Program-made: the position numbers and the translations under genes | From: Geosiphon pyriformis uo1 | Lineage: Eukaryota; Fungi; Glomeromycota | Direction: 5' to 3' | Assembly (NCBI GenBank): GCA_016748015.1 | Contig: JAAOMT010000657.1 | Span: 496,001 to 560,000 of the forward strand | DNA length: 64,000 nt | Notes under the pieces: generated by a model | What the model was told of the DNA's origin: nothing | The model's input: the letters and a program-made list of their open reading frames with translations, nothing else | The model's database searches: none | Shown here: one piece after another, positions 4,174-19,085 of the stretch | Position numbering within the stretch: position 1 is the first letter of the stretch | Layout of the letters: every line of letters begins with the position of its first letter

Positions 4174-5261
4174 GTAGAGAAATCACTCACACCAGTGTAA
4201 CCGACAACAGCAAAATTTTACCAGAGTCCGGCCTCATGAAGAATTTGATAAGTTTGAGAAAGAAACTTTTTAGGATTATCAGTAAAGATGGGAAGTGATT
4301 TTTTTTGGGGGGTTTTTTTTTGAAAAGTTATTAATCTTATTTATCGATCTGATTGTTTATCCTATTTTATATACAAAATGATTAAATTTTGTATTGAGCA
4401 AATAATTATTGTTTTTTAAATATGAAAAATATATTTTATTAACACATTTTATAATGCAATAGATATTTAAAAATAGAAAATGACATTTATACATTATGTT
4501 TTATTTAAAAATATTTTGATATTAAAATAAATATTATATAAAATAAAAAATAAGATAAAAATTTTTAATTTAAAAATAAAGATACAGTAATATTTTTTAT
4601 TTTTAAAAATAAAAAATTTTTAAAAAAAACTTTATTTTCAAGTTTTTTTTTTTTTCTTTTTTAAAATATATTTCATAATATGACCAAAAAGAAAAAAGTA
4701 TCTTGGATAAGATCTTGGTCATTCAAATGAAAATTGTTTGTTTATGTCTTTTTCATTTTTATCAAAAATAAATTTTTTTTTTTCCAATAAAAGATTATTT
4801 GGTTGATTTTCTGGTGAAATCAAATGCAAAAGAAATTGCAAAAAAAGTTAAACGTTTTTTGAAAGGTTTGTTTACCATCCTCAAATTTTATCCTTTGAGA
4901 GAGAGAGTCTTTTAACGTGTAACCAGATACTGATAGTATCCTATAAACAAAAAAAAAAATCTCGGAGAAATTCGTAAATGAAAAATTGCACGGTTTTTGC
5001 GACCAATTTTTAATAGTCCGAGGCTTTTTTTTTTCTTATTAAAACGAATTTGATGATGATAAACTCAACTAATTATTTACATAACAAAAGGAATAAAAAT
5101 ACTTTTCTTTTAAATACTGTCTATGATCATAGGTTCCCGAGATTAAATATAAATGGAAAGAATATGTAGAAAATTTAAAAACTAAAACAGAAATTGGCTT
5201 AAAATTATTTCAAAAAAAAAAATTTCCCTCAATTAATAAAATCATTACGTGTACGCTCAAT

Positions 5262-5755
5262 ATGTCAAATTTAAATCGAAACCGAAAAAAGTTCAAACCT
5301 TCAAGTTCGGAATACCTTAAAACCACAAACATTTTCTTGGAATTTTCTCATCATTTTTTAAAAATCTTGGTCATTCTAATTTTTTTGCAAACTACAACAT
5401 TAAGCACTGCAACTCCGATACTCCATCGTCGTCAATATATTAACAATGTATTAAACGGAATAGACCAAGAACAGGGACAGGAACAAGAACAAGAACTGTA
5501 TGGCAACGGTTATCCAGAAAATTCAATTGATCCAAATTCCGATATAACCTCTAACGGAAATATCTACCCAACGCCAAACCCAAATTATATTAATAATTTG
5601 GGTGTTGGGGGAAATAATATTCCTAACAATCCTTATTCTCAAAATCCTTATTCTAACAATCCTTATTCTAATAATGATGATGAAACACCGGCTTCTCCAA
5701 CCAAAGAGGAAAATGCAGTACTTTTAGCTGAATTTTACAGTCAAACCGGATACTC

Positions 5756-5797
<42 letters not shown>

Positions 5798-6254
5798 AAC
5801 ATCGGTTCCTTCAACCAAAGAGGAAAATGCAGCACTTTTAACGGAATTTTACGGTCAAACTGGTTACGATCCAACTATTGGAGGATCATACACCTCGGAG
5901 CAAAGTAATATCTCAAATATTAGTGAAAATTCTGATACCCTTGATACAAATTACCCAAATAATCAATCAGAACAACAACAACAACAACAACAACAAGAAA
6001 CTGCTCCGGTAGATACCCAACCAAAGGTTCAGGGGGATATCGACTCGGGAAGGGCTGAAGATGGTGATAGTTCAAACTATTCAGATGATGATCAAGAGCA
6101 AGATCTAACAAGTGAAAAGATTAATGACGAAACTAATCAAATAAATGCTTCTGTTACCAAAACACCAATTACGGAAAATGCTTTTATAAAACAACTAAAA
6201 ACTTATAAAAGTCCAATTGTATCAATGGTCCCGAAAATTCTTGCTAGAAAATAA
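5262..6254 (+). CDS. Secreted low-complexity N/Q/D/S-rich protein (330 aa); probable truncated paralog of the neighbouring lipase-like genes
   Basis: Intact ORF with a basic leader, hydrophobic signal (FLKILVILIFLQTTTLSTA) and Kex2-like RR. It has a duplicated 24-aa motif ETxxxxTKEENAxLLxEFYxQTGY plus poly-N and poly-Q tracts. Confidence 0.75.
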
Positions 6255-6890
6255 TTTCAAAATCATGATACCAGAATTCAAGAATTAGTTAATTTAAAAA
6301 ACCTTTTTTTTTTAAAAGTATCTTTGTATTATTCTTGAAATTGAAATTGAAATTGAAAATCAAAAAATATTATCGGGAAACTAATAAACCTTGAAGTTTC
6401 TGATTGCTACTTGTTATCTAAAGGGTTTTTTGATACTATGAAAAAACACGTACTTGTGAGCCATGTCAGATTATTGCGAGTTCTAAAAGTTTTACGAATT
6501 TTTTGAAGACTTTGGAACTATCAAATATTCTTTTTAAAATGATAGCAGATTGAAAAGGATGGCCTTTAAAAAAATTAATGGAATTTTTAAATTCATTTTT
6601 TCATAAGATTCCCATAAAATTCCCATAAAACAATTCATTTAGACAAGTTTAGAAATTAGTTTTTAAAATTTATTGTGAAGTTTTCTTTTCAAAATTTCAT
6701 TATTAACTTGTTGAGATTACTAACTTGTAAATCAAAAACTAACAAGTTTAATATGAATAAAAGCTCAAATGATAAATATATTAGTCAGATATCAATGCAA
6801 TCCAATTATGAATTTTAAGTGCTGCTAACACCATCACCACCACCACCACCACCACCACCATCACTACTAATACCACCATTACTATCACTA

Positions 6891-9800
6891 TTAATTACCC
6901 TGTGATTGTGATGTCGGGCACTCTCCAAAAACCACACCAAAATAGGGTCCATTGTGCGCTGCCGCAGATGATTGGCCGGCTTGAGTGAACCGTGCATTAC
7001 ATTTCTAAAAAGGTTTTTTAGCGTTTATTAATTTATTTATTGATTAATCGAGTCCGAATTCAATTTCTTTAAGTCCGTTAATAAAAAAATTCTTGAACAT
7101 ACCTGATTTTCCGCTCCTTCGAATGGACTGCATTCAATCAGTCTCTGGGTTTGTGAAGTGACAATTTGCCAGTATTCGGTTGTATGATGTTGATAACCGT
7201 CGGCTGTAGAAGGAAGGTTAGAGTTGGGATCGTTATTATTGGTGATACGGAAGACCGAACCGGAGAAGCTATTATCAACGTATCCGGCAAACGCGGGATT
7301 TCCGAGACGCGATTCACCATACGTGTATACTTTAATATCACGATTATTTAAAGCTCGTTTCAATGCAAGAGCCGTAAATATTGCGTGACCTAAGTAAAAA
7401 ATAAAATATTCAACTTTTAACATTGATCGAATAAGATTTAACAGTGAAATCATCATTCAGTAGGATTTTGATAAAAATGATAAAAATACCTGCACCGGTA
7501 TCAAATCCAGCCACTATAATTGGTAGATTAGCGTTTTCTCCACCCAATACGGGAGTAAGCTGTTTAATCAAGTTTTCCTCGTCATTAATGTATTGGGAGA
7601 AAATTTCAGAGTTAACTGTGGCACCTTGGGCATTTTCATACGCTTTACCATTCTTATCGACATATGGGACCAAAGTTTTGGCTGGTGGAGAAAAATTTGT
7701 AGTACGACCTTTAAACGATATGACAATTTTGTTCGTAGATTTGCTCTCAAATGCGAATCCTATAAATCAGAAATGAGACAAAGTGATAAATAATTTTAAA
7801 TTTTATAGTACAAAGTAACTTAATTGATGGGAAATGGTGGATCCAGTTTCTACCTGTAACACCAGCATCACTACCCAACTTGACGATATTTTCTTGTGGT
7901 AGAGGTGGACAATAATTAGCGTTGACTAAATTGGCATAGGTAGTAAAGTCCGAGTTAAGGTCTTGATTCGTGGTCACCTCCTTTAACCCACTACCAAGAT
8001 CCTTGGATTCGGTAGGAGTAGTAGGAGTTGCAGGGTTAATCGGGGTGGAACTAGAGTCCGGACTCGTGGAACTAACACTTGTACCAACTGGGAGAGAAAC
8101 CTTCTGACTAGCAGCAGCAGCTAATTGCGCTTTATTCCTATCGTTCAGAACACCTTGATTAAAGTTGTTTTGGTTTATTTGAGCCTGAAGTTTCGCGTCT
8201 AGTAACTTTTTTTGATAATCTAATAGATCTGCGTTTTTTTGTTTTTCAATACCCGCTGCCTCCCTGAGTTGTGCAATTTGTGCACTTTTTGGACTTGGTA
8301 CAAGCCACTGAAATAAAGGTGGTATAACTTTCTGCGCTAGAACAGCAAGCGTGGTGGTATATATACTATCTGTGTGTGGTTGTGTTAATCGTTGGTTTTG
8401 TACTTGAATTACATTCCTTTGCTGTTCAATCCCATCTTCTATTTCTTTCGGAGTATATTGTTGTGCAACCGTTCTTGAATTGCCTGTAATGCCACTTATA
8501 GTGGATGGGGTATTGTCATCATTAAAAGCTACTTTATTATCTGTTGATAAGTTAATTGGCGTATTAAATGCAGAAGGGTCACCAAGTGGTTTGTCGCTTG
8601 CCACCTTCAAGTCGGAATTAATTACACCTTTAAAATCAGTTGAACCGTTTGATGATTCAGAGACCGGAGTTTGGGAATTGGTTGATGATTCAGAGGGTGT
8701 TGATAAAGCAATTGGTGCATTAAATGCAGAAGAGTCACCAACTGATTTTTCGTTTGGGACGGTAAAGTCGAAATTATTTGAACTTTTAAAATTCGATGAG
8801 TCGGTTGGCAGAAAAGCTAGTGTTTCGGGAGTTTTTGATGTTGAATCAGGTAGCTGAGCAAACAGTGAGCCAGAATTATTTGGAGAGGTGGTTTCAGCTG
8901 TTGAATCAGGAGTAGTTGGTAGCTGAGCAACTGTTGAACCAAAAGTAGTTGAATCAGGAGTAGTTGAATCAGGAGTAGTTGGTAACTGAGCAACTGTTGA
9001 ACCAAAAGTAGTTGAACCAAAAGTAGTTGAATCAGGAGTAGTTGGTAGCTGAGCAACTGTTGAATCAGAATTTTTCGATGTTTCAGGAGGAGTGGTGGTT
9101 CCAGCTGTTGAATCAGGAGTAGTTGGTAGCTGAGCAACTGTTGAATCAGAATTTTTCGATGTTTCAGGAGGAGTGGTGGTTCCAGCTGTTGAATCAGGAG
9201 TAGTTGGTAGCTGAGCAACTGTTGAATCAGAATTTTTCGATGTTTCAGGAGGAGTGGTGGTTCCAGCTGTTGAATCAGGAGTAGTTGGTAGCTGAGCAAC
9301 TGTTGAATCAGAATTTTTCGATGTTTCAGGAGGAGTGGTGGTTCCAGCTGTTGAATCAGGAGTAGTTGGTAGCTGAGCAACTGTTGAATCAGAATTTTTC
9401 GATGTTTCAGGAGGAGTGGTGGTTCCAGCTGTTGAATCAGGAGTAGTTGGTAGCTGAGCAACTGTTGAATCAGAATTTTTCGATGTTTCAGGAGGAGTGG
9501 TGGTTCCAGCTGTTGAATCAGGAGTAGTTGGTAGCTGAGCAACTGTTGAATCAGAATTTTTCGGTGTTTCAGGAGGAATGATGGTTCCGGCTGTTGAATC
9601 AGGAGTAGTTGGTAGCTGAGCAACCGTTGAATCAAGAGTAGTTGTTAGCTGAGCAGCCGTTGAATCAGGAGTAGTTGTTAGCTGAGCAGCCGTTGAATCA
9701 GGAGTAGTTGTTAGCTGAGCAGCGGTTAGATCAGGAGTAGTTGTTTCGGGAATAGTTGGTAGCTCAGCAACTGTTGCAGTCGTTGATTCAGGTTCGGGAG

Positions 9801-10155
9801 TCGATAACGGCTCAGCGTTAAAAGATTCAGACCCGAAATAAGGTTGAGAATCGGAACCCGAAATTTCACCAAGCGAAGTGGAACCAAAGCTATTGCCAGT
9901 ATCACCAATATCAGCGGAAGCAACAAAAACTGAATCTCCAATACCCCCACCACCCCCAACACTAAAACCCCCATCACCACCGCCACCGCCACCATCATCC
10001 TGTCTTTTTTGAAATTTAATAAATGGCGCAGCCGAGACTAATAAATTTGAGATTAACAAAAGCGACAGGAAAATTATGAAGAAAATGTTTAACCGTGGTT
10101 GAAATTTTTTCGTTGTCACAAGTAGTGACCTTGTGTTAAGATTTAATGGTAACAT
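6891..10155 (-). CDS. Secreted mucin-stalk Lipase_3-fold protein A (~990 aa), nucleophile motif GFDTG
   Basis: Hand-built exons 10155-7854, 7759-7490, 7389-7103 and 7004-6891 have GT-AG introns with consistent phases. Motifs: signal peptide + KR, YANLVNANYC, IVISFKG, VAGFDTGAGHA, YTYGESRLGNPAFA, RITNNNDP, YQHHTTEYW, AHNGPYFG. Confidence 0.9.
8895..9780 (-). repeat. Coding tandem repeats in lipase A: 81-bp unit x7 (STVAQLPTTPDSTAGTTTPPETSKNSD) flanked by 33-bp units (STxAQLxTTPD)
   Basis: 81-bp period (e.g. 9061, 9142, 9223); six identical copies and one variant. Confidence 0.97.
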
Positions 10156-10869
10156 TTTTAGAAGAAGTGAAAGAAAAAGATTTGTGAAATTGATGATGAG
10201 GAGTACTCTAGGAAAAAAAAGAAAATTTTTTGATGGTTCCTTCTTTGTATCGATTAAATATTTATTGAATATTTATGAAACAGAAGAGATGAAAATTTGA
10301 TTCAGATTTAAAGAATATAATAAATCTTATTGTTTTCAGTAAAAAAAAGGGTGAATTGAAAAGAAAATTTGAAAAGCTCACTCAATAGAGAGCTCTGGTA
10401 ATGAAAAAGAATGTAAAAAAAAAAAAAAGAGAAAAGAAAAAACTTTTGTTCGATGGGTTACAAGTAAATATCGGTGGGCATTTTATATAATACACATTTA
10501 TTAAGAAAATTTAACTTTCCTTTAAGTTTACGGATTACCTTTTGTCACGTTTATGCCATTTGAAAGTTCCGTTAATAATTTGATAAAGTTTTTTCGGATT
10601 TTCTATTTTTGTTATACAAAGATTTTTTGTTTAATGTAAAAAGTAAAAGCAATTTTTTTTTTAAAAAAAAAATATATATATATTTTACTTATTATTTATT
10701 TATTTATTTATTTATACCTTTATTTATGCCTTCAAGAAACGAGTATTGGGAATTGGCTAATAAGTTGATAGTTGATACGTTTTACAGTCTCAAGAAGTTG
10801 AAAAGAATTAAAATTTTGGAAATTATTTTTTTTAAAGATAATTATTATCATGATATTTAGCGAACATAC

Positions 10870-11169
10870 ATATAAATGAATGAATGAATGAATGAATGAA
10901 TCAATAATCAATAAAATATACATATATATTAAGTTCGGGGAAATAGTTGAATATGCATGAAAAAAAAGAAATATTTAGTCCACAATCATAATGGAATTAA
11001 GTTTTGACTTTTGTATTACATTTAACTTTAAACCTTTCCTTTAGTTAGCTTAAATTATATTCAGTAAAGAAAAAGAAAAAGAAAAAGAAAAAACCAGAGT
11101 GGAGAATAGAGAGAAAATTTTCATTTCACTTGAAAATTTTTAATAAGCTTATCAATTTTATTATTATTA

Positions 11170-11208
<39 letters not shown>

Positions 11209-11235
11209 CGATTTAATTGATAGGAGAAACTGAGA

Positions 11236-11273
<38 letters not shown>

Positions 11274-11372
11274 ACGTTCTTTTTTGATCTTTCTTAGCTT
11301 TTTCCGTGATCGTTAAAATAAAAATAAAAATGCTCGGGAATCTTTATTGTCTGTCTGTCTGTCTGTCTGTCT
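10870..11372. repeat. Microsatellite cluster (TGAA)n, (AAAAAG)n, two (TTA)n, (GTCT)n in the divergent intergenic region
   Basis: Visible at ~10875, ~11065, 11160, 11237 and 11349. Confidence 0.9.
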
Positions 11373-12074
11373 GAATTCAATTAGCAAAGAATTTAAATAG
11401 TCCTTTTAATTTAGTTACTACTAACATCAAACAAAAAATATCATGAAAAAAAAATAAATAATAATAATTCCTTGTAGAACAATATACTTTCGGAATATTA
11501 TCTAAAAATTTTTTTAAAAGGTAATAATGTCCCCCCCATGAAATCATTTATAATTATCTTTTGAAAGCAATATAAAGAAAGCCCGAAATGATTTACATTT
11601 AAATTTAGGTATCTAGCCTTTTTTTGCCAAAAAATTTTTTATCTATTATAAAACTTTTCTCTCTTCGGATAAATGTTCTTCAAAGTTTACAAAATTTGTC
11701 ACTTTTGTAAAAATCTCACTTTTAAAACTCCAGCTTTTTTTGAAATTTTTAATAATCAATAGAAAAAGTAAACACATGTCGTTTCAAATTATATTGAGTC
11801 ACAATAATTTTTGATTATTAAATTAGTATTCTCAAAATATCACAATCTAAATAATAAAAAACTTCATCCCCCATTTTATATATTATTATGAAATCAAAAA
11901 AAAAATTATACTTTTTCGATTTTTATAAATCAATTTCTTTCATGATTACTTGTGAATCTTTTAAGGTAACATATTTGTTTTTCCATAATCTGTTAACTTT
12001 TCATATAAATACAAAAAAAAAATCCTTCATCACCACCTAGAAAACAAAATTTATCTTATTTTATCTATCTTAAA

Positions 12075-14760
12075 ATGGTGAATTCACACAATAATTTTAT
12101 TTCACTTTGGTCTTTATTTAACTTTAAGCTACGCAACAAAAATAAACGACTTCACGAAGAAAGAAACATTTTCTTTATAATTTTATTTTCTCTTTCCATA
12201 CTAACTCATACCCTGGTGGTTGTAGAATCTGTACCATTAATCAGTAACAAATTTGATTCAATTGCTCAGTTTGAAAATCCGAGTATTAATAATAATGAGC
12301 TTGCCTTTGTAAATGATCCTTTAAACCTCTCTGAACCAATAGGGTCTAGCATAATTCCTGAATCAGAAAATACACCACTTAATGGGGAATTTAATATGGC
12401 TAATAATTTTGATTCTCCATCATCTACTACTATAGCATCAACATTTATTGATGGTGGAGAATTTCCAAATACTAATTCAGCACAAGACCAAATCGCTAGC
12501 AACCCATTTTTAACTCAAGACCAAATCCCTAGCGACTCATTTTCAACCCAAGGTCAAATTCCTAGTGACTCATTTTCAACTCAAGGTCAAATTTCTAGCG
12601 GCTTATTTTCAACTCAAGGCCAAATCGCTAGCAACACATTATCAACTCAAGATCAAGTTCCTAGCGACTCATTTTCAACTCAAGACCAAATTCCTAGCGA
12701 CACATTAACAACTCAAGACCAAATCCCTAGCGACACATCATCAACTGAAAATCAAGTCGCTAGCGACACGTCATCAACTCAAGACCAAATCCCTAGCGAC
12801 ACATCATCAACTGAAAATCAAGTCGCTAGCGACACGTCATCAACTCAAGACCAAATCGCTAGCGACACATCATCAATACAAGGCAATACCGCTAATCTAA
12901 TTGAAACACAAGATTCTCTTTCTAATCAGGAGTCTAATCAATTTTCAACGCAAACCATTAATGAAGGAGTTTTTCAAGCTCCTAAAACTTCCAACCCTCC
13001 ATCTGTCGCTTTTTTAAATAACGAAGCTTCTGACAATCAATCGAACTCTTTCGAAGTAGCAACGGCTTCCACTGATGATTTTCTTCAAGATACTGGGTTA
13101 GTTAAAAATAAGCCAGGATCAGCCCAAAATTCATTAAGTGCTAAACCAAGTGAATCTGAAATTTCGATCCCAGTCAAATCCCCAGTGCCTTTGTCACCAG
13201 AAAATGGGGGCAATAGTGATCCTACAACATCCACTGAAACTCAACCTAATGATAACTCATCAACGGCCCCTGAACCTACAAATACGTTACCAAGCTCTAA
13301 TAGTAGTAAAGATAATGGAGAATCCTTTGCGCATCGATTGATGTCAGAATGGGAAACTAACCAGAAACCACCAAGTATTTATACTCAAAATATTATCAAA
13401 AGTTGGAATAGAAATTCAGGAGAATCCATTAGTAGTGGTAGCAATCGTGAATCAACCCAAAACCCACCAAATTCGGAGCAACAATCTATTCAGGTGCAAG
13501 TTCCCCCACAAGAGTCATCGCAGCAACAAGTTCCCCCACAAGAGTCGTCGCAGCAACAAGTTCCCCCACAAGAGTCATCGCAGCAACAAGTTCCCCCACA
13601 AGAGTCATCGCAGCAACAAGTTCCCCCACAAGAGTCGTCGCAGCAACAAGTTCCCCCACAAGAGTCGTCGCAGCAGCAAGTTCCCACACAAACCGATCAA
13701 ACCACCTCTGGCAATATGCGGCCACTCACTGGCGACGTATTGAAGGGATTTAAAACATATGCATCTCTTGCAAACCTTGCCTATTGTACAGATCTACCGT
13801 TGGAGAAAGGAATGATGAAATTTGGGGACGGTGATGGTGTTTCAGGTATCTTAAATTCCTTCAAAAATCTTGTTAATTTTCAGCAAATTAAAAATTTTAA
13901 TCATCCAAATGTTTTATATTTGCTTAGGATTCGTGTATGTCAATCAAAAGGCTCATAATGTCATTTTTGGTTTCAAAGGGCCCACTTCACCTAATGATGA
14001 AAAACTTATCGATAAAAGCTCATTGGAACCTTATAAAGATGGTGGCCAAGTTCATGCTGGATGGTATAATACATACTCCAGCGCGGAACCTGGTCTTATT
14101 CCAAAAATGGTAGAATTTATAAACCCATTTTTGCAAACTTCCCTACCGTTCAAACTTTTTTTTACTGGCCACGATTCCGGTGGTGGTATGTGATTACTGA
14201 TCATAATCAAAGATGAGACAGTTGACTTGATTTTTTTGATCAGGATATTTTGATATTTATTTTCCTCTCATATCTTTCGTAACAATAATATCAGCCTACG
14301 CAGTATTCACAGCACTCGCTTTGCAAAAAAAATTTAGCCTCAAAAAAGTGTCCGTTCTTACCTTTGGTCAACCACGTCTTGGTGACGCCCAATTTGCTCA
14401 ACTCGTAAACTCTAGGCTTGTTGTATACAGAATCACTGTGGGCAATGACATTGTTTCGAATACACCATCGCGAGATAATGGTTACATCCATTTCCAAAAT
14501 GAAGTTTGGTATAACAAAGGCTCCGCTTATGTTTGTCGTGCTCCTAATGGACAAGAAAATCAGGTTCGTTTTCAGATCTTTATTTTGGCAATTTCTTTAT
14601 TTCAAAAATAACCCTATTTTTCTTTCAGAGCTGCAATCAAGGCCAGAAGCCGTTAAGTTCCGAGCTACACGATGGTCGTTACTTTGAAGTCATGATGAAT
14701 CATTGCCCTAGACCACGTGTCAATAGTATTCCTGGTTTTTCGAGGGCCCAAGTCGCATAA
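12075..14760 (+). CDS. Secreted mucin-stalk Lipase_3-fold protein B (~809 aa), nucleophile motif GHDSG
   Basis: Exons 12075-13845, 13928-14185, 14295-14563 and 14629-14760, with the same three intron positions and phases as lipase A. Motifs: YASLANLAYC, VIFGFKG, QVHAGWY, FTGHDSGGAYA, TFGQPRLGDAQFA, RITVGNDIVSNTP, YIHFQNEVW, LHDGRYF. Confidence 0.92.
12481..12876 (+). repeat. Coding 33-bp repeat x12 (TQDQIPSDxxS) in lipase B
   Basis: 11-aa periodicity in the translation and 33-bp periodicity in the DNA. Confidence 0.95.
13498..13686 (+). repeat. Coding 30-bp repeat x6 (QVPPQESSQQ) in lipase B
   Basis: ttcccccacaagagtc at 13501, 13531, 13561, 13591, 13621 and 13651. Confidence 0.97.
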
Positions 14761-15163
14761 TTTTGTAAAATACTCGGTATTTATCTCACTATTACCATTA
14801 AAACTTAAATTCAAGATTTCGGTGTTAGATTTATGACTAGAAAATTTATCAAATCTATTGTTAAAATAGGCATTATTCCAATGTTTGATAGGAATCTTTT
14901 TACGATTGACTGAACCTTGTATTCTGCAACTACTTGGATTACCAGATCGTGAAGAATACTGCGAAAAAGTATAATATATGATATGGGGCGTGCTGCAACA
15001 AAATCAGACAAAGTGAACATTAAGGATGACGCTATCCTGCTGGAATTATTCACATAGGTGATAATTTGCTTGATTTTCACTCTCCCTACTTATTTTAACT
15101 CCCTGAGGTTCTTTCAAATTTTTATTGGGTACATAATAAAATATAAAATAAAAATGAATAAAC

Positions 15164-15703
15164 ATGAATAATAATTGCGATTCTCTCTATTCACTAATCA
15201 AACAAAAATCCCAAGAAAAAGGTCGTCCGTAAAAAATAATTTGTGATTGAGATGATTGTTTACAAGCAACGAAACCAAGAGTGGTTTTTGAGAATACTCG
15301 ACCTCGTATTCCCTTTGAAAAAATTTTGGGAGTTTGATTTCCATAACTATTGGCAATTCAGAAACTGAAAAAGCCTGAAAAAGATTTTTTAATGAAAGAA
15401 GGAGTATTAGTGAAAAAGTAGAGTATCTTAAAGGAGATAAACCCAATGATGACTTGTATAATTATTTAAAAGAAGTTTTCAACCCAGTTTTTATAAAAGA
15501 ACCCTTTTATTTCCACTTTTGATGACTTATTGTTAGCATTAAATGAATACTTATTTATCATTTCCACTATTTATACGCCTTTAGCTCTAGAAATCGACAA
15601 AGAATTGATAAATAGAATAAAAAGGTCTAATGAAAAGAAGCAGGATACAATATTCAAAATTGCTTCTAATTATCAAAAACCACTGCTGATGCCGCTAGGA
15701 TAA
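15164..15703 (+). pseudogene. Decayed intronless HAD-like gene with UGA at Trp-like positions; probable Mollicutes-related endobacterium (MRE) origin
   Basis: MNNNCDSLYSLIKQKSQEKGRP*KIICD[TGA]DDCLQATKPRV gives HAD motif I (hhhDxD) if TGA=Trp. Later frames read ETEKA[TGA]KRFFNE and PFISTFDDLLLALNEYLFIIST. One TAA and several frameshifts are present. Confidence 0.55.
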
Positions 15704-15959
15704 AAAAGAACCCAGAGGGTAACTTCTTTTCTCATCCCTAAGAAGTAATTAAATAATCTTTTTGACTTGTCCAACTCTTCTTTTTCTTTAAAGTCTACTT
15801 TAAATTTTGTAAACCAAATTTCTAACATTAATGAAAAGATTTTAGTGTTAATTAAATATTTATCTAATAGAAAAGTAACTGGTCTTAATATTTACCATAT
15901 CAAAGTTAGCACAAGTTATTTAAAATATCAAGATTTGTCTTAAATGAAAATAAACAGTT

Positions 15960-16704
15960 AAAGAAAGAATTATAAACTATTAAAAATAAAACTTCGAAGA
16001 AAATTTACAACCAAATTATACTAAAAAAATTAAATTCAAAAATGTAAACAAAGTTTATAAATAAAACTATTTAAAAACAAATCACAAAAAAAAATTGCGT
16101 AATTTTCAATATAAATTATAAATAATGTTTAATTTATTTAAAAAAAACATTAATTTTTTTTTACTATATTTACAAAAATAATTAACACAATTTATTATAA
16201 TCTTGTAATAAAATTTTTTATTTAATTTAAAATTATTATTATATTTAAATTTAATATAATCTAATATTTTTATAATAATTACAGATTACTAAATATAAAT
16301 AAAACTATTTTGTTTTTTGTATTATTACAAATGATTTAAATAATTTTTTTTTTATTTGGTTTTTTAATTTTATTAAATATTAAATTAAACATATTAATTA
16401 ACAAGTTTTTTGTTTTTTTGTTAATTTAATATTTTTGTTTTTTTGTTAATTTGGTATTTTTATTATAATAACCTTTTTTTAACTTGGTTTTGATTAATTA
16501 ATTTTGAAATTTTTAATAAGTCTTAATCTTTTTTTTGGTTACAGTTTTAAATTAAAAATTATTTTTCAAATATTAATATGTATTATATAAATTAAGTTTA
16601 AAAATTTATAATTTGTAAAAAATGTTATATTTTAAAACATGTAAATTTGTTAAAAAGTTATAATAAACAAACTTAGAATTTATTTTTACTAATAAAAAAA
16701 TTTC

Positions 16705-16743
<39 letters not shown>

Positions 16744-16920
16744 TTTTAAAAGAATTATTATTTTAGTTTTTATTTAAACATTTTGGTATTATTATAAAAC
16801 TGTAAAAAAAAAACAAATAAATTTTCTTAATTTAAAATATTTCAATATTTATTTAATAATTTTTGCTTTTTAATAAATTATATAAGTTATTTTTTATTTG
16901 AATATTTCTTAATACTTAGA
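15960..16920. other. Extreme A/T-rich block (probable terminally mutated repeat DNA)
   Basis: Almost no C or G and no ORFs; preceded by a LINE RT-like scrap LIKYLSNRKVTGL at ~15845-15890. Confidence 0.7.
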
Positions 16921-16999
16921 CACAAGACACATTAAATTTTAAAAAGTGAGAATAAATCTAATAAAACAAGAGTTTGATAAGCAACAAAAAATCACAAAA

Positions 17000-19085
17000 T
17001 TGTACACAATGCTAAAACACAAACATCTTAAGTGTCTTGTCATTTGGAAAAAGCCATTCTCAAACTAGGCACCTCATTTTTGCCCAGTTTTATACATGAC
17101 ATAATATATTTCTATAAAAAAATTTTTTTAGATTCAATTACGAACAGAGAATAAATTCCTCAGACAAAGGAAAGAAATATTATCTTGACCATGAGAAGGA
17201 GTTTGACAATATTAACAATATTGGAAAAGGAAACATATTTAAAAGGATAATTTATTTTCAACATCTTTTCGACCACGAATGTTCCTGGCGCTGCCAAATT
17301 TATCCGAAAAAGCTCACCTAAAATATTTTGCACACAATTTCTTGAAGTTTTTAATAATATTACTGTGATATTTGGAATGTCGCATCTTGGCAGGTGGACT
17401 GAGGTTTTTGAAAATAAAGAATTCCTACTCAGTGCAATCATAATTAAATAGAATACCATCAGCCTTGCATGCTGAACCAATACTACTGGAGACCAATTTG
17501 CAACATCATTTTGACGAAAGAACATCATTCTCATTCCTATTCAAATAAAGATTGTTAGACGAGTTCTGGCATTTCTATTAATTGCAACTACCATCGACTC
17601 ATAAAAAGTGAAGCATATCTTTAAATTTTCAAAATCAGGTGCCATGACTGTTAAAGTATGTGTTCTTGTCCATGGAATCATCAAGCTTTTCCCTATGACC
17701 TGCTTGTCGAGCATGTGCTTCAACAAATTGAACTCCTGTGTGCCAAAACCCTCAATTCCTTTGGTTGCTTGTAGGTAGTGTTTATTTCTCACTAAAAATA
17801 TTCTAATTATAACAGGACAATAAATCAAAGAAATTTGAAGAGAACAGAAGCATCTCTTATCATAACATTATCTATTATCCATTTTTTAAACCATCAAGAT
17901 TAATTCAAGGCATAGGCGTGGATTAAGCTGTCGTTTTTAATTTCTTAAAAAAGTACTGATTCACTAAAAGATTTTTTAACAATTTGAGCTTCAGTCGATC
18001 TATGCAATAAGTAATTACACATGAATAAGACTATATTGTAATCAATTAAATGTTTATAAGAACTCATTATGGTATCTTTTTTCGAATTCTTCATCAGTAA
18101 TAGAATCCATCTCTTCTGCTTTTAAAACCTCATTGTCTTCAGCTCTTTAAGATTTGAATAGAATATTAGAACTTGAACACACAAAATATTTCAAGCTATG
18201 GCCCTTAGTAAAGATAATTACAAAGATATTGTCCCTGCGCATCCTCTAAAATATAGAGATGTAGAGTAAATGGATGGTTTAACATGAAAATATGATGAAA
18301 TTAAAATGTTGAGCAACCTTTTCAAAAGCCTTCCTTCGACACTTGGGAGCTTTCATTGTCATGGATTAAAAAAGGTTGTCATCGACATCCCTGTAATTCT
18401 CAGAGTTATCATCATCTCGTTGCTGGACCAATGAAAAATATTAATGTTGTTTCACAGAGACAATCCAACCAAACGGATTAACTGACTTACTCTTTTATGA
18501 CCCAGGACAATTCCTTTTGCACGATTTTCTGTGACTTCGTCATCAAGGTTTCTATATGCCTAGACAATTTCTGTTGCACGTTTAACCATAGTCAAAATGG
18601 CCGAATTCTTCCAGAGGCTTGACTGATTTGATATCCTCCTTGGCAATAATAAGAATACATAAGTGATACAATTTAAACTATAGGAACGACGAAACACAAA
18701 ATAGCATATTGGCAGTATGTGGATGGAAGGTCTCCGCTTGCCCACCATCCCTGGCGCGTAGTCAGAAAAGCATAGCAAGTGACCTGCAGATCACCTGTCC
18801 CAGCGTGTAGTTGAGGCAGGTCCCCGATTCGGCTAATTTGCTGAGACATACTCAATAAGAGGTGCAAAACGATCCTCCATCCACCTAAATTAGAACTAAG
18901 CACTGACCTTCTTCGCATTCACAAGACGACGAGCGTTTTTGACTTCGTTTTCAGTTGATGTGTCTTGTAAGAGCACGGTATTTAAATAATTGTAGAAAGT
19001 TTCATGGCTCTTTAATTTGAGGGCTGGCCAGGAACCAAAGCTGGGAAATCCGTGAAATATTTTTTATAATTTTCGACAGACTAAT
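17000..19085 (-). pseudogene. Decayed multi-exon gene, possibly a PD-(D/E)xK-nuclease/Crinkler-type multicopy family member
   Basis: Exon-like pieces HETFYNYLNTVLLQDTSTENEVKNARRLVNAKK|gt, RATEIV*AYRNLDDEVTENRAKGIVLGHKR|gtaag, cag|QRDDDNSENY and SIGSACKADG, with in-frame stops and frameshifts. The family call is weak. Confidence 0.4.

Follow-up and report, generated by a model that had tools for sequence, protein, structure and literature searches.

Two stalked proteins of Geosiphon pyriformis carry a lipase-fold domain with aspartate in place of the catalytic serine, probably as a binding module

Does an aspartate at the nucleophile elbow of a class-3 lipase domain mark an enzyme with a new nucleophile, or a lipase fold that has given up catalysis? 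The question is raised by two divergently transcribed, head-to-head genes in a 64,000-nucleotide stretch of the Geosiphon pyriformis genome (contig C683, positions 496001-560000; hereafter the window). G. pyriformis houses Nostoc cyanobacteria and is the sister of mycorrhizal fungi; no other fungus is known to take up cyanobacteria. Gene A (G9A89_015712; protein P0002) and gene B (G9A89_015713; protein P0001) each encode a long repeat region followed by a Lipase_3 domain with Asp at the position of the catalytic Ser. A preliminary description of the window had left two alternatives, an Asp-nucleophile enzyme or a pseudo-enzyme held out on a stalk. The latter fits the evidence reported here, while the former is weakened by the Gly-dominated clade to which the domains belong and by the absence of the oxyanion Ser/Thr. 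We consider A and B, with moderate confidence, to be non-catalytic lipase-fold binding domains displayed on stalks, because the oxyanion Ser/Thr has been lost, the lid seems degraded, Asp has arisen repeatedly and Gly is the dominant residue at the elbow.

The translated exons of genes A and B were identical to the deposited proteins P0002 and P0001, and the gene models bore out the head-to-head orientation that had been described (Table 1). Exons were used as individual search queries, and the deposited proteins stood for the spliced products. Exon 3 matched the Pfam family Lipase_3 (PF01764) with 34.5 bits in A and 41.6 bits in B (cut-off 22), and PF01764 was also precomputed on both deposited proteins. 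Nothing besides Lipase_3 was significant in the Pfam search of the two genes, which returned no dehalogenase/epoxide-hydrolase family and no EP domain; the sole other match, SPO24 on the gene A stalk, reached 14.1 bits, far under its cut-off of 27. AlphaFold models built on family alignments had a predicted local distance difference test score (pLDDT) of 92.9 and a predicted template modelling score (pTM) of 0.92 for the A domain, and values of 90.3 and 0.90 for the B domain. The top Foldseek neighbours of both models were Aspergillus niger feruloyl esterase A (FaeA) and the Rhizomucor, Rhizopus and Thermomyces lipases, with template modelling (TM) scores of 0.72-0.81 and E-values of 1e-14 to 1e-16. 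Each protein has four Cys, all within the domain and at lipase disulfide positions. The lipase-like domain spans residues 735-990 of P0002 and 555-809 of P0001, and the models place it in the fungal class-3 lipase fold.

On alignment with the Rhizopus lipase 1LGY, the elbow Asp fell on the catalytic Ser145, as had been proposed. The elbows VAG-F-D-T-G-A in A and FTG-H-D-S-G-G in B, together with the positions of their GAT codons, had been read exactly, in exons that reproduce the deposited proteins. The triad acid and the late His were likewise kept: GNDIV aligned with Asp204, and the His came to lie at a distance of one residue from His257. The reported change of the oxyanion motif FRG[ST] to FKGR in A and FKGP in B also stood: Pro609 of P0001 lies on Thr83 of the Rhizopus lipase, and Arg occupies that site in A. 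The lid, which had been called short, appears so in B, where alignment and model give a lid three residues shorter than in 1LGY, with a hydrophilic 7-residue helix (DEKLIDK) and no lid Trp; in A, the AlphaFold model shows instead an unwound, Pro-rich coil, and both lid shapes are those of models. A neighbouring Ser or Thr as the true nucleophile was rejected as a candidate. The residue after the Asp is Thr in A and Ser in B, and it is Ile in A', the counterpart of A in a second copy of the pair described below; it thus differs even between A and A'. As both the Ser nucleophile and the oxyanion Ser/Thr are replaced, the best reading of the sequence is that the domain is not a lipase.

The exon that carries the elbow in gene B is supported by spliced contigs. 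In two runs from two studies (X2 and X3; region 13700-14900), exactly the three predicted coding introns were gone, and a further intron in the 3' untranslated region (UTR) had been removed as well. A contig of the genomic run X1 was colinear with the gene B locus and retained the introns, unlike those of X2 and X3; the run types of X1, X2 and X3 are guessed labels. When an intron-less copy of gene B was sought in the genome, only the window copy and a broken paralogue were found. Since the genome holds no intron-less copy, the spliced contigs are best read as transcript assemblies, and therefore gene B is transcribed and the GHDSGG exon is real. The splicing check by transcripts that had been suggested is in this way answered for gene B, and alternative splicing that restores GxSxG in this gene is ruled out. 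For gene A such splicing is unlikely, the elbow lying within exon 2 beside its beta-strand; a look-up of contigs on record that encode P0002 listed none. The introns of gene A are at the same three positions as those of gene B, and in both genes introns 1 and 2 are in phase 1 and intron 3 is in phase 0.

The pair belongs to a Lipase_3 expansion of the Geosiphon genome that comprises at least 171 exon matches among 150 scored candidates. We tallied the elbow residue by domain in 52 sampled Geosiphon loci and the 150 best representatives from a profile search of 1.84 billion proteins, and found Ser in 84, Gly in 73, Asp in 11, Arg in 4, Ala in 3, Asn in 2, and Cys and Phe in 1 each. A DNA-pattern census of the genome for the elbow followed by the conserved intron donor gave 308 Gly sites, 56 Ser sites (AGY codons only) and 22 Asp sites, and reversed-pattern controls gave 2, 2 and 1, respectively. 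The Asp elbow is beyond chance as a pattern, because 22 genome sites stand against 1 in the reversed control. That it might be exclusive to the A/B pair is ruled out by these 22 sites and by Asp-bearing paralogues. The donor GGTA directly follows the elbow in both A and B, and a phase-1 intron at this place is family-wide (approximately 386 sites). The three shared intron positions, which had been pointed out as a bond between A and B, are therefore common to both but not special to the pair.

Of approximately 35 serine-less relatives that were looked up, all were from Geosiphon except one three-domain protein of an ichthyosporean (Chromosphaera), and the relatives looked up in Glomus, Entrophospora, Gigaspora and Racocetra had all kept Ser. 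A search with a 39-sequence profile yielded 19 matches, 18 of them from Geosiphon, and carries little information on other taxa. The family amounts to about 400 serine-less lipase look-alikes, so far seen solely in G. pyriformis. A full-text literature search returned no mention of a Geosiphon serine-less Lipase_3 family, which seems undescribed in the searchable literature.

Three further observations concern the family at large. The Chromosphaera perkinsii protein (P0025, EukProt, 1467 aa) has three Lipase_3-like domains with the elbows GFSSGA, GYGVGG and GYGLGG, and shows that Gly has come to occupy the nucleophile position independently in a non-fungal lineage. Another elbow, GHGEGG, in which Gly replaces the nucleophile and is followed by Glu, recurs in the Geosiphon family, for example in P0008, P0012, P0015, P0029, P0047, P0066 and P0075; it occupies several distinct positions in the tree, and many GGNGAR codon pairs were present in the census. 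Many Geosiphon family members (P0004, P0005, P0006, P0009, P0010, P0012, P0014, P0023 and P0034) are annotated with 2-4 tandem lipase-like domains, and are either true multi-domain proteins or array neighbours merged by annotation.

Elbow codons were mostly AGT or AGC for Ser, GGN for Gly and nearly always GAT for Asp. Asp is one transition away from Gly (GGT) and one from Asn (AAT), both of which are seen in the family. It had been argued that the change from Ser to GAT needs two base changes; this is true, but as an argument it loses its weight, since AGT>GGT>GAT or AGT>AAT>GAT are single steps through states found in living paralogues. In alpha/beta hydrolases, the nucleophile is constrained by its elbow to a strained conformation with a positive phi angle, which Gly, Asn and Asp tolerate best. 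The elbow states of the family match this preference once Ser is dispensable. A variant of the Gly elbow that is compatible with the backbone and one mutational step away is a simpler explanation of the Asp elbow than new chemistry.

Trees were computed with a quick posterior mean site frequency (PMSF) analysis under a site-heterogeneous model and with FastTree, and their deep branches were mostly unresolved. In a 54-row tree, the serine-less domains and a few Ser-bearing ones formed one clade, with A and B inside, at 98% support in the Shimodaira-Hasegawa-like approximate likelihood ratio test (SH-aLRT). Asp had at least two origins on well-supported branches of this tree, and up to seven by parsimony. 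Uniting A, A', B and the GFDSGG genes in a single Asp clade was not rejected (log-likelihood 8 units better than the free quick tree; approximately unbiased test, p-AU 0.71), and a common ancestral origin of the Asp in A and B is therefore probable. The elbows GHDLGG, GHDIGG and GFDIGG arose separately within Gly clades. The Asp shared by the diverged paralogues, which the preliminary description had emphasized, was thus probably inherited; its retention need not be a sign of catalysis, because Gly, Asn and Asp are the residues best suited to the elbow backbone.

These results bear on the first of the two alternatives, in which the D-[ST]-G branch would be an Asp-nucleophile enzyme with an Asp-His-Asp triad and an aspartyl-ester intermediate on a Lipase_3 scaffold. 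Its elbow has the required small-x-Asp-x-small form, wherever the alignment covers them, A, A', B and the other Asp-elbow domains retain the His and the acid Asp, the models show an intact fold with high confidence, and the Asp has been retained across deep divergence, with one Asp clade not rejected by the tree test. However, about 308 genes have Gly at this position and others of the clade have Ala, Asn, Arg, Cys or Phe, Asp arose more than once from such backgrounds, and GHNSGG is the elbow of the paralogue remnant nearest to B. As first oxyanion residue, A has Arg and B has Pro, a residue that lacks a backbone NH. Neither an HGxP motif nor a Pfam match to dehalogenases or epoxide hydrolases was found, no cap domain was seen, and the best structural neighbours are lidded fungal lipases and FaeA. 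In addition, Asp is favoured at positive-phi positions just as Gly and Asn are. We regard such an enzyme as very improbable. Its fuller version, in which a dead scaffold has turned into an Asp-His-Asp enzyme in A, B and the GFDSGG genes, with A and B acting from a glycosylated surface stalk, perhaps on a Nostoc envelope or lipid substrate, would be slightly less probable still.

The loss of catalytic elements extends through the family. The residue after FxG was Thr or Ser in 74 of 86 Ser-bearing domains, and Pro, Lys, Asn, Glu or others in the 101 serine-less domains. Among aligned domains, 83 of 84 with a Gly elbow and all 10 with an Asp elbow had the triad acid Asp; for the late His the counts were 69 of 72 and 8 of 8, respectively. 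Two of the four catalytic elements, the Ser and the oxyanion Ser/Thr, have thus been lost together, and two, the Asp and the His, have been kept.

The kept residues weigh against a purely non-catalytic domain. The triad Asp varies hardly or not at all, and roughly 90% or more of the aligned serine-less domains have the His; a pure binding module has no obvious need for them, which is the main point against our reading. Furthermore, the elbow Asp has survived divergence down to approximately 30% identity within the Asp branch, and this retention, together with the unrejected single Asp clade, could reflect function rather than backbone fit. One explanation would be catalysis without a nucleophile, in which a family-wide His-Asp dyad serves as general base on a substrate or water and the elbow only shapes the pocket. 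Cofactor-free dioxygenases of the alpha/beta fold are a precedent for such His-Asp catalysis, and the retention of Asp and His counted above is what it would call for. Against it, there was no positive sign of any substrate, the oxyanion residue is degraded and the lid seems so too, and the fast change outside the core, with pairwise ratios of non-synonymous to synonymous substitution rates (dN/dS) of about 1, is more typical of binding and recognition families; the Asp and the His may also be kept for loop packing. We consider this mode of catalysis unlikely.

A second head-to-head copy of the whole pair was found on contig C653 at 780200-786700 (loci L032, L054 and L065). Its gene A' (G9A89_011963; P0003) was 84-93% identical to A over single lipase-domain exons and 90% over the aligned domain. 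In the lipase domain, summing exon by exon gave 17.5 synonymous and 23.5 non-synonymous differences between A and A', equivalent to a dN/dS of 0.37. A' carries a nonsense mutation, TCG>TAG, at codon 96; the deposited P0003 model skips this codon via a 27-nt "intron" and also removes the hydrophobic segment that the A' DNA encodes in frame. Of B' there is only a frameshifted fragment, which contains a stop, lacks exons 3-4 and has an elbow remnant reading GHNSGG. The divergent pair was duplicated as a unit, the C653 copy is decaying, and the window holds the intact copy.

Six paralogues with GFDSGG or GSDSGG elbows showed pairwise dN/dS values of 0.70-1.34 at a synonymous divergence (dS) of approximately 0.25-0.3, the near-identical L034 and L035 (dS 0.045) excepted. 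Five of the six had no stop, although under substitutions alone an uninterrupted frame would be expected with P≤0.04 in each lineage. The invariant columns of these paralogues clustered in the core motifs, with a run of 11 that occurred in 0 of 2000 shuffles. Selection is thus discernible in the branch. The preliminary description had named random elbow residues with dN/dS near 1 across the family as evidence that would speak against its reading. The Asp is non-random (22 sites vs 1 in the control) and A and A' differ with a dN/dS of 0.37, but the GFDSGG paralogues lie at about 1.

Such values, together with the decay of the C653 copy (the nonsense codon of A', and the frameshift and missing exons of B'), would agree with A and B being non-functional leftovers of a lipase duplication burst, drifting to pseudogenes. 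We find this highly unlikely. The window genes have open frames of 990 (A) and 809 (B) codons that include long repeats, B is transcribed and correctly spliced, A and A' show the low dN/dS in the lipase domain, and conservation extends to the core motifs and to each of the four disulfide Cys; for the GFDSGG paralogues, neutral drift would have produced stops with P≥0.96 in every single lineage. The combination of a conserved core and rapid change elsewhere fits binding and recognition families better than enzymes or junk.

The remainder of each protein suggests where such a domain would be displayed. A and B each have one hydrophobic segment, preceded by a basic stretch of 23-31 residues, and in A the segment is followed downstream by VSA and then by a KR dibasic site. 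This N-terminal segment is predicted to be a signal peptide or signal anchor. Secretion of both proteins is predicted from this single hydrophobic segment and from the placing of the four Cys where lipases have their disulfides, and a glycosylphosphatidylinositol (GPI) anchor is unlikely because there is no C-terminal hydrophobic tail. The region between segment and domain is 690 aa long in A and 505 aa in B, is free of Cys, and consists of Ser, Thr and Pro to 42% (A) and 37% (B). With its tandem repeats, it agrees with the stalk that had been described. "Mucin-like stalk" is a fair description of this repeat region, which presumably carries O-glycans and has an extended shape. Of the Asp-elbow proteins that were examined, only A, A' and B had a long, mucin-like stalk of tandem repeats.

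We propose that A and B enter the secretory pathway via the N-terminal signal peptide or signal anchor, and that the long, Cys-free stalk of Ser/Thr/Pro-rich tandem repeats would hold the domain away from the hypha. The dead lipase-fold domain at the C-terminus would most likely be a module that binds a hydrophobic or lipid-like ligand or else the surface of a partner. Its elbow Asp would be one of the few residues (Gly, Asn and Asp) that fit the strained positive-phi elbow, one base change (GGT to GAT) from the commonest state of the family. A and B are the stalked members of a small Asp-elbow branch of the serine-less family.

The Geosiphon genome paper reportedly describes an inability to make fatty acids as common to Geosiphon and mycorrhizal fungi. 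About 400 serine-less lipase look-alikes that change fast outside their core are a plausible repertoire for lipid capture or partner recognition, and A and B may have a role in the symbiosis. In this pair the family domain is carried on the tip of a long, mucin-like stalk, which suggests surface display. New here are the stalk, the transcript support for gene B and the finding that the pair exists in a second copy, which is decaying. Work on localisation and binding could well begin with the stalked members, as B is transcribed and the architecture predicts the site of the protein.

The features of the two genes are listed in Table 1. The intergenic region between the two start codons is presumed to function as a bidirectional promoter. 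A 330-aa open frame (window 5262-6254, plus strand) lies just past the 3' end of gene A. It combines a hydrophobic segment close to the N-terminus with low-complexity sequence that is rich in Asn and Gln and includes poly-N and poly-Q runs; its product may be another secreted low-complexity protein. At 16000-17000 of the window, the GC content is just 10-11%, compared with the usual 21-48% over 5000-17000.

Table 1. Features of genes A and B, in window coordinates.
Feature	Position	Strand	Basis or remarks
Gene A, G9A89_015712 / P0002, 990 aa	6891..10155	minus	exon reading and deposited protein
Gene A exons	7854-10155, 7490-7759, 7103-7389, 6891-7004 (stop 6891-6893)	minus	exon reading
Gene A introns	7760-7853, 7390-7489, 7005-7102	minus	all GT..AG
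Gene A N-terminal hydrophobic segment, aa 24-42	10030..10086	minus	19-residue window, mean Kyte-Doolittle 2.59
Gene A stalk tandem repeats	8900..9745	minus	81 nt x 7.5 (99% matches), 63 nt x 2.6, 33 nt x 4.6; Thr/Pro/Ser-rich
Gene A nucleophile-position Asp codon GAT (elbow GFDTGA)	7500..7502	minus	
Gene A triad acid Asp codon GAT (ITNNNDP)	7229..7231	minus	
Gene A late His codon CAC (AAAHNGPYF)	6954..6956	minus	
Intergenic region between both start codons	10156..12074		1.9 kb, AT-rich, ~21% GC
Gene B, G9A89_015713 / P0001, 809 aa	12075..14760	plus	exon reading and deposited protein
Gene B exons	12075-13845, 13928-14185, 14295-14563, 14629-14760 (stop 14758-14760)	plus	exon reading
Gene B introns	13846-13927, 14186-14294, 14564-14628	plus	GT..AG; all removed in contigs of runs X2 and X3
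Gene B N-terminal hydrophobic segment, aa 32-50	12168..12224	plus	mean Kyte-Doolittle 2.53
Gene B stalk repeat, 33 nt x 11.9 (STQDQIPSD-type units)	12483..12876	plus	
Gene B stalk repeat, 30 nt x 6.5 (QQVPPQESSQ)	13497..13691	plus	
Gene B Pro codon CCC (FKGPT; Pro609 of P0001), at oxyanion-hole Thr83 of Rhizopus lipase	13981..13983	plus	1LGY alignment
Gene B nucleophile-position Asp codon GAT (elbow GHDSGG)	14173..14175	plus	
Gene B triad acid Asp codon GAC (ITVGNDIV)	14447..14449	plus	
Gene B late His codon CAC (SELHDGRYF)	14668..14670	plus	
Gene B 3' UTR intron, 93 nt, GT..AG, 17 nt past stop codon	14777..14869	plus	joint 14775>14869 (cut +1) in X2 and X3

Compared with known systems, haloalkane dehalogenases and epoxide hydrolases share with A and B the small-x-Asp-x-small elbow and the presence of a His and an acid in triad order. 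They differ in having an HGxP oxyanion motif, where A and B have FKG[RP], and a cap domain with halide- or epoxide-binding Trp/Tyr, whereas the scaffold of A and B is that of a lidded fungal lipase and gave no match to their sequence families. The plant proteins EDS1, PAD4 and SAG101 have a class-3 lipase-like fold and were weak structural matches to the A and B models. They use this fold without lipase catalysis, and SAG101 is without the triad. However, their TM scores with A and B were only about 0.5, they carry an EP domain of which Pfam found none in A and B, and there is no close sequence kinship; they also form intracellular heterodimers, whereas A and B have a secretory-pathway architecture.

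The fungal class-3 lipases and FaeA (Rhizomucor miehei 3TGL/4TGL, Rhizopus 1LGY/1TIC, Thermomyces 1DT3 and A. niger 1USW/2IX9) are like A and B in fold (TM 0.72-0.81) and in belonging to PF01764. Common to both groups are also an AYC helix at the N-terminus, an ND motif for the acid, a late His ahead of YF and the disulfide Cys positions. They have a Ser nucleophile where A and B have Asp, and an oxyanion Thr83 or Ser82 where B has Pro and A has Arg. The lid of B appears three residues shorter than theirs, hydrophilic and without Trp, and that of A is a Pro-rich coil in the model. In A and B, moreover, the His is one residue further from YF and a stalk of 505-690 aa stands in front of the domain. 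The serine-less family of Geosiphon itself, typified by the elbow GHG[LIV]GG, falls in the same clade as A and B at 98% support, has the phase-1 intron right after the elbow, and shares the motifs FGQPRxG, xTxxxD and HxGPYF, the loss of Ser and of the oxyanion Ser/Thr, and the kept Asp and His. A and B differ from these relatives in their elbow, which is Gly at 308 sites and Asp at 22 sites genome-wide, and in having a stalk and forming a duplicated, divergent pair.

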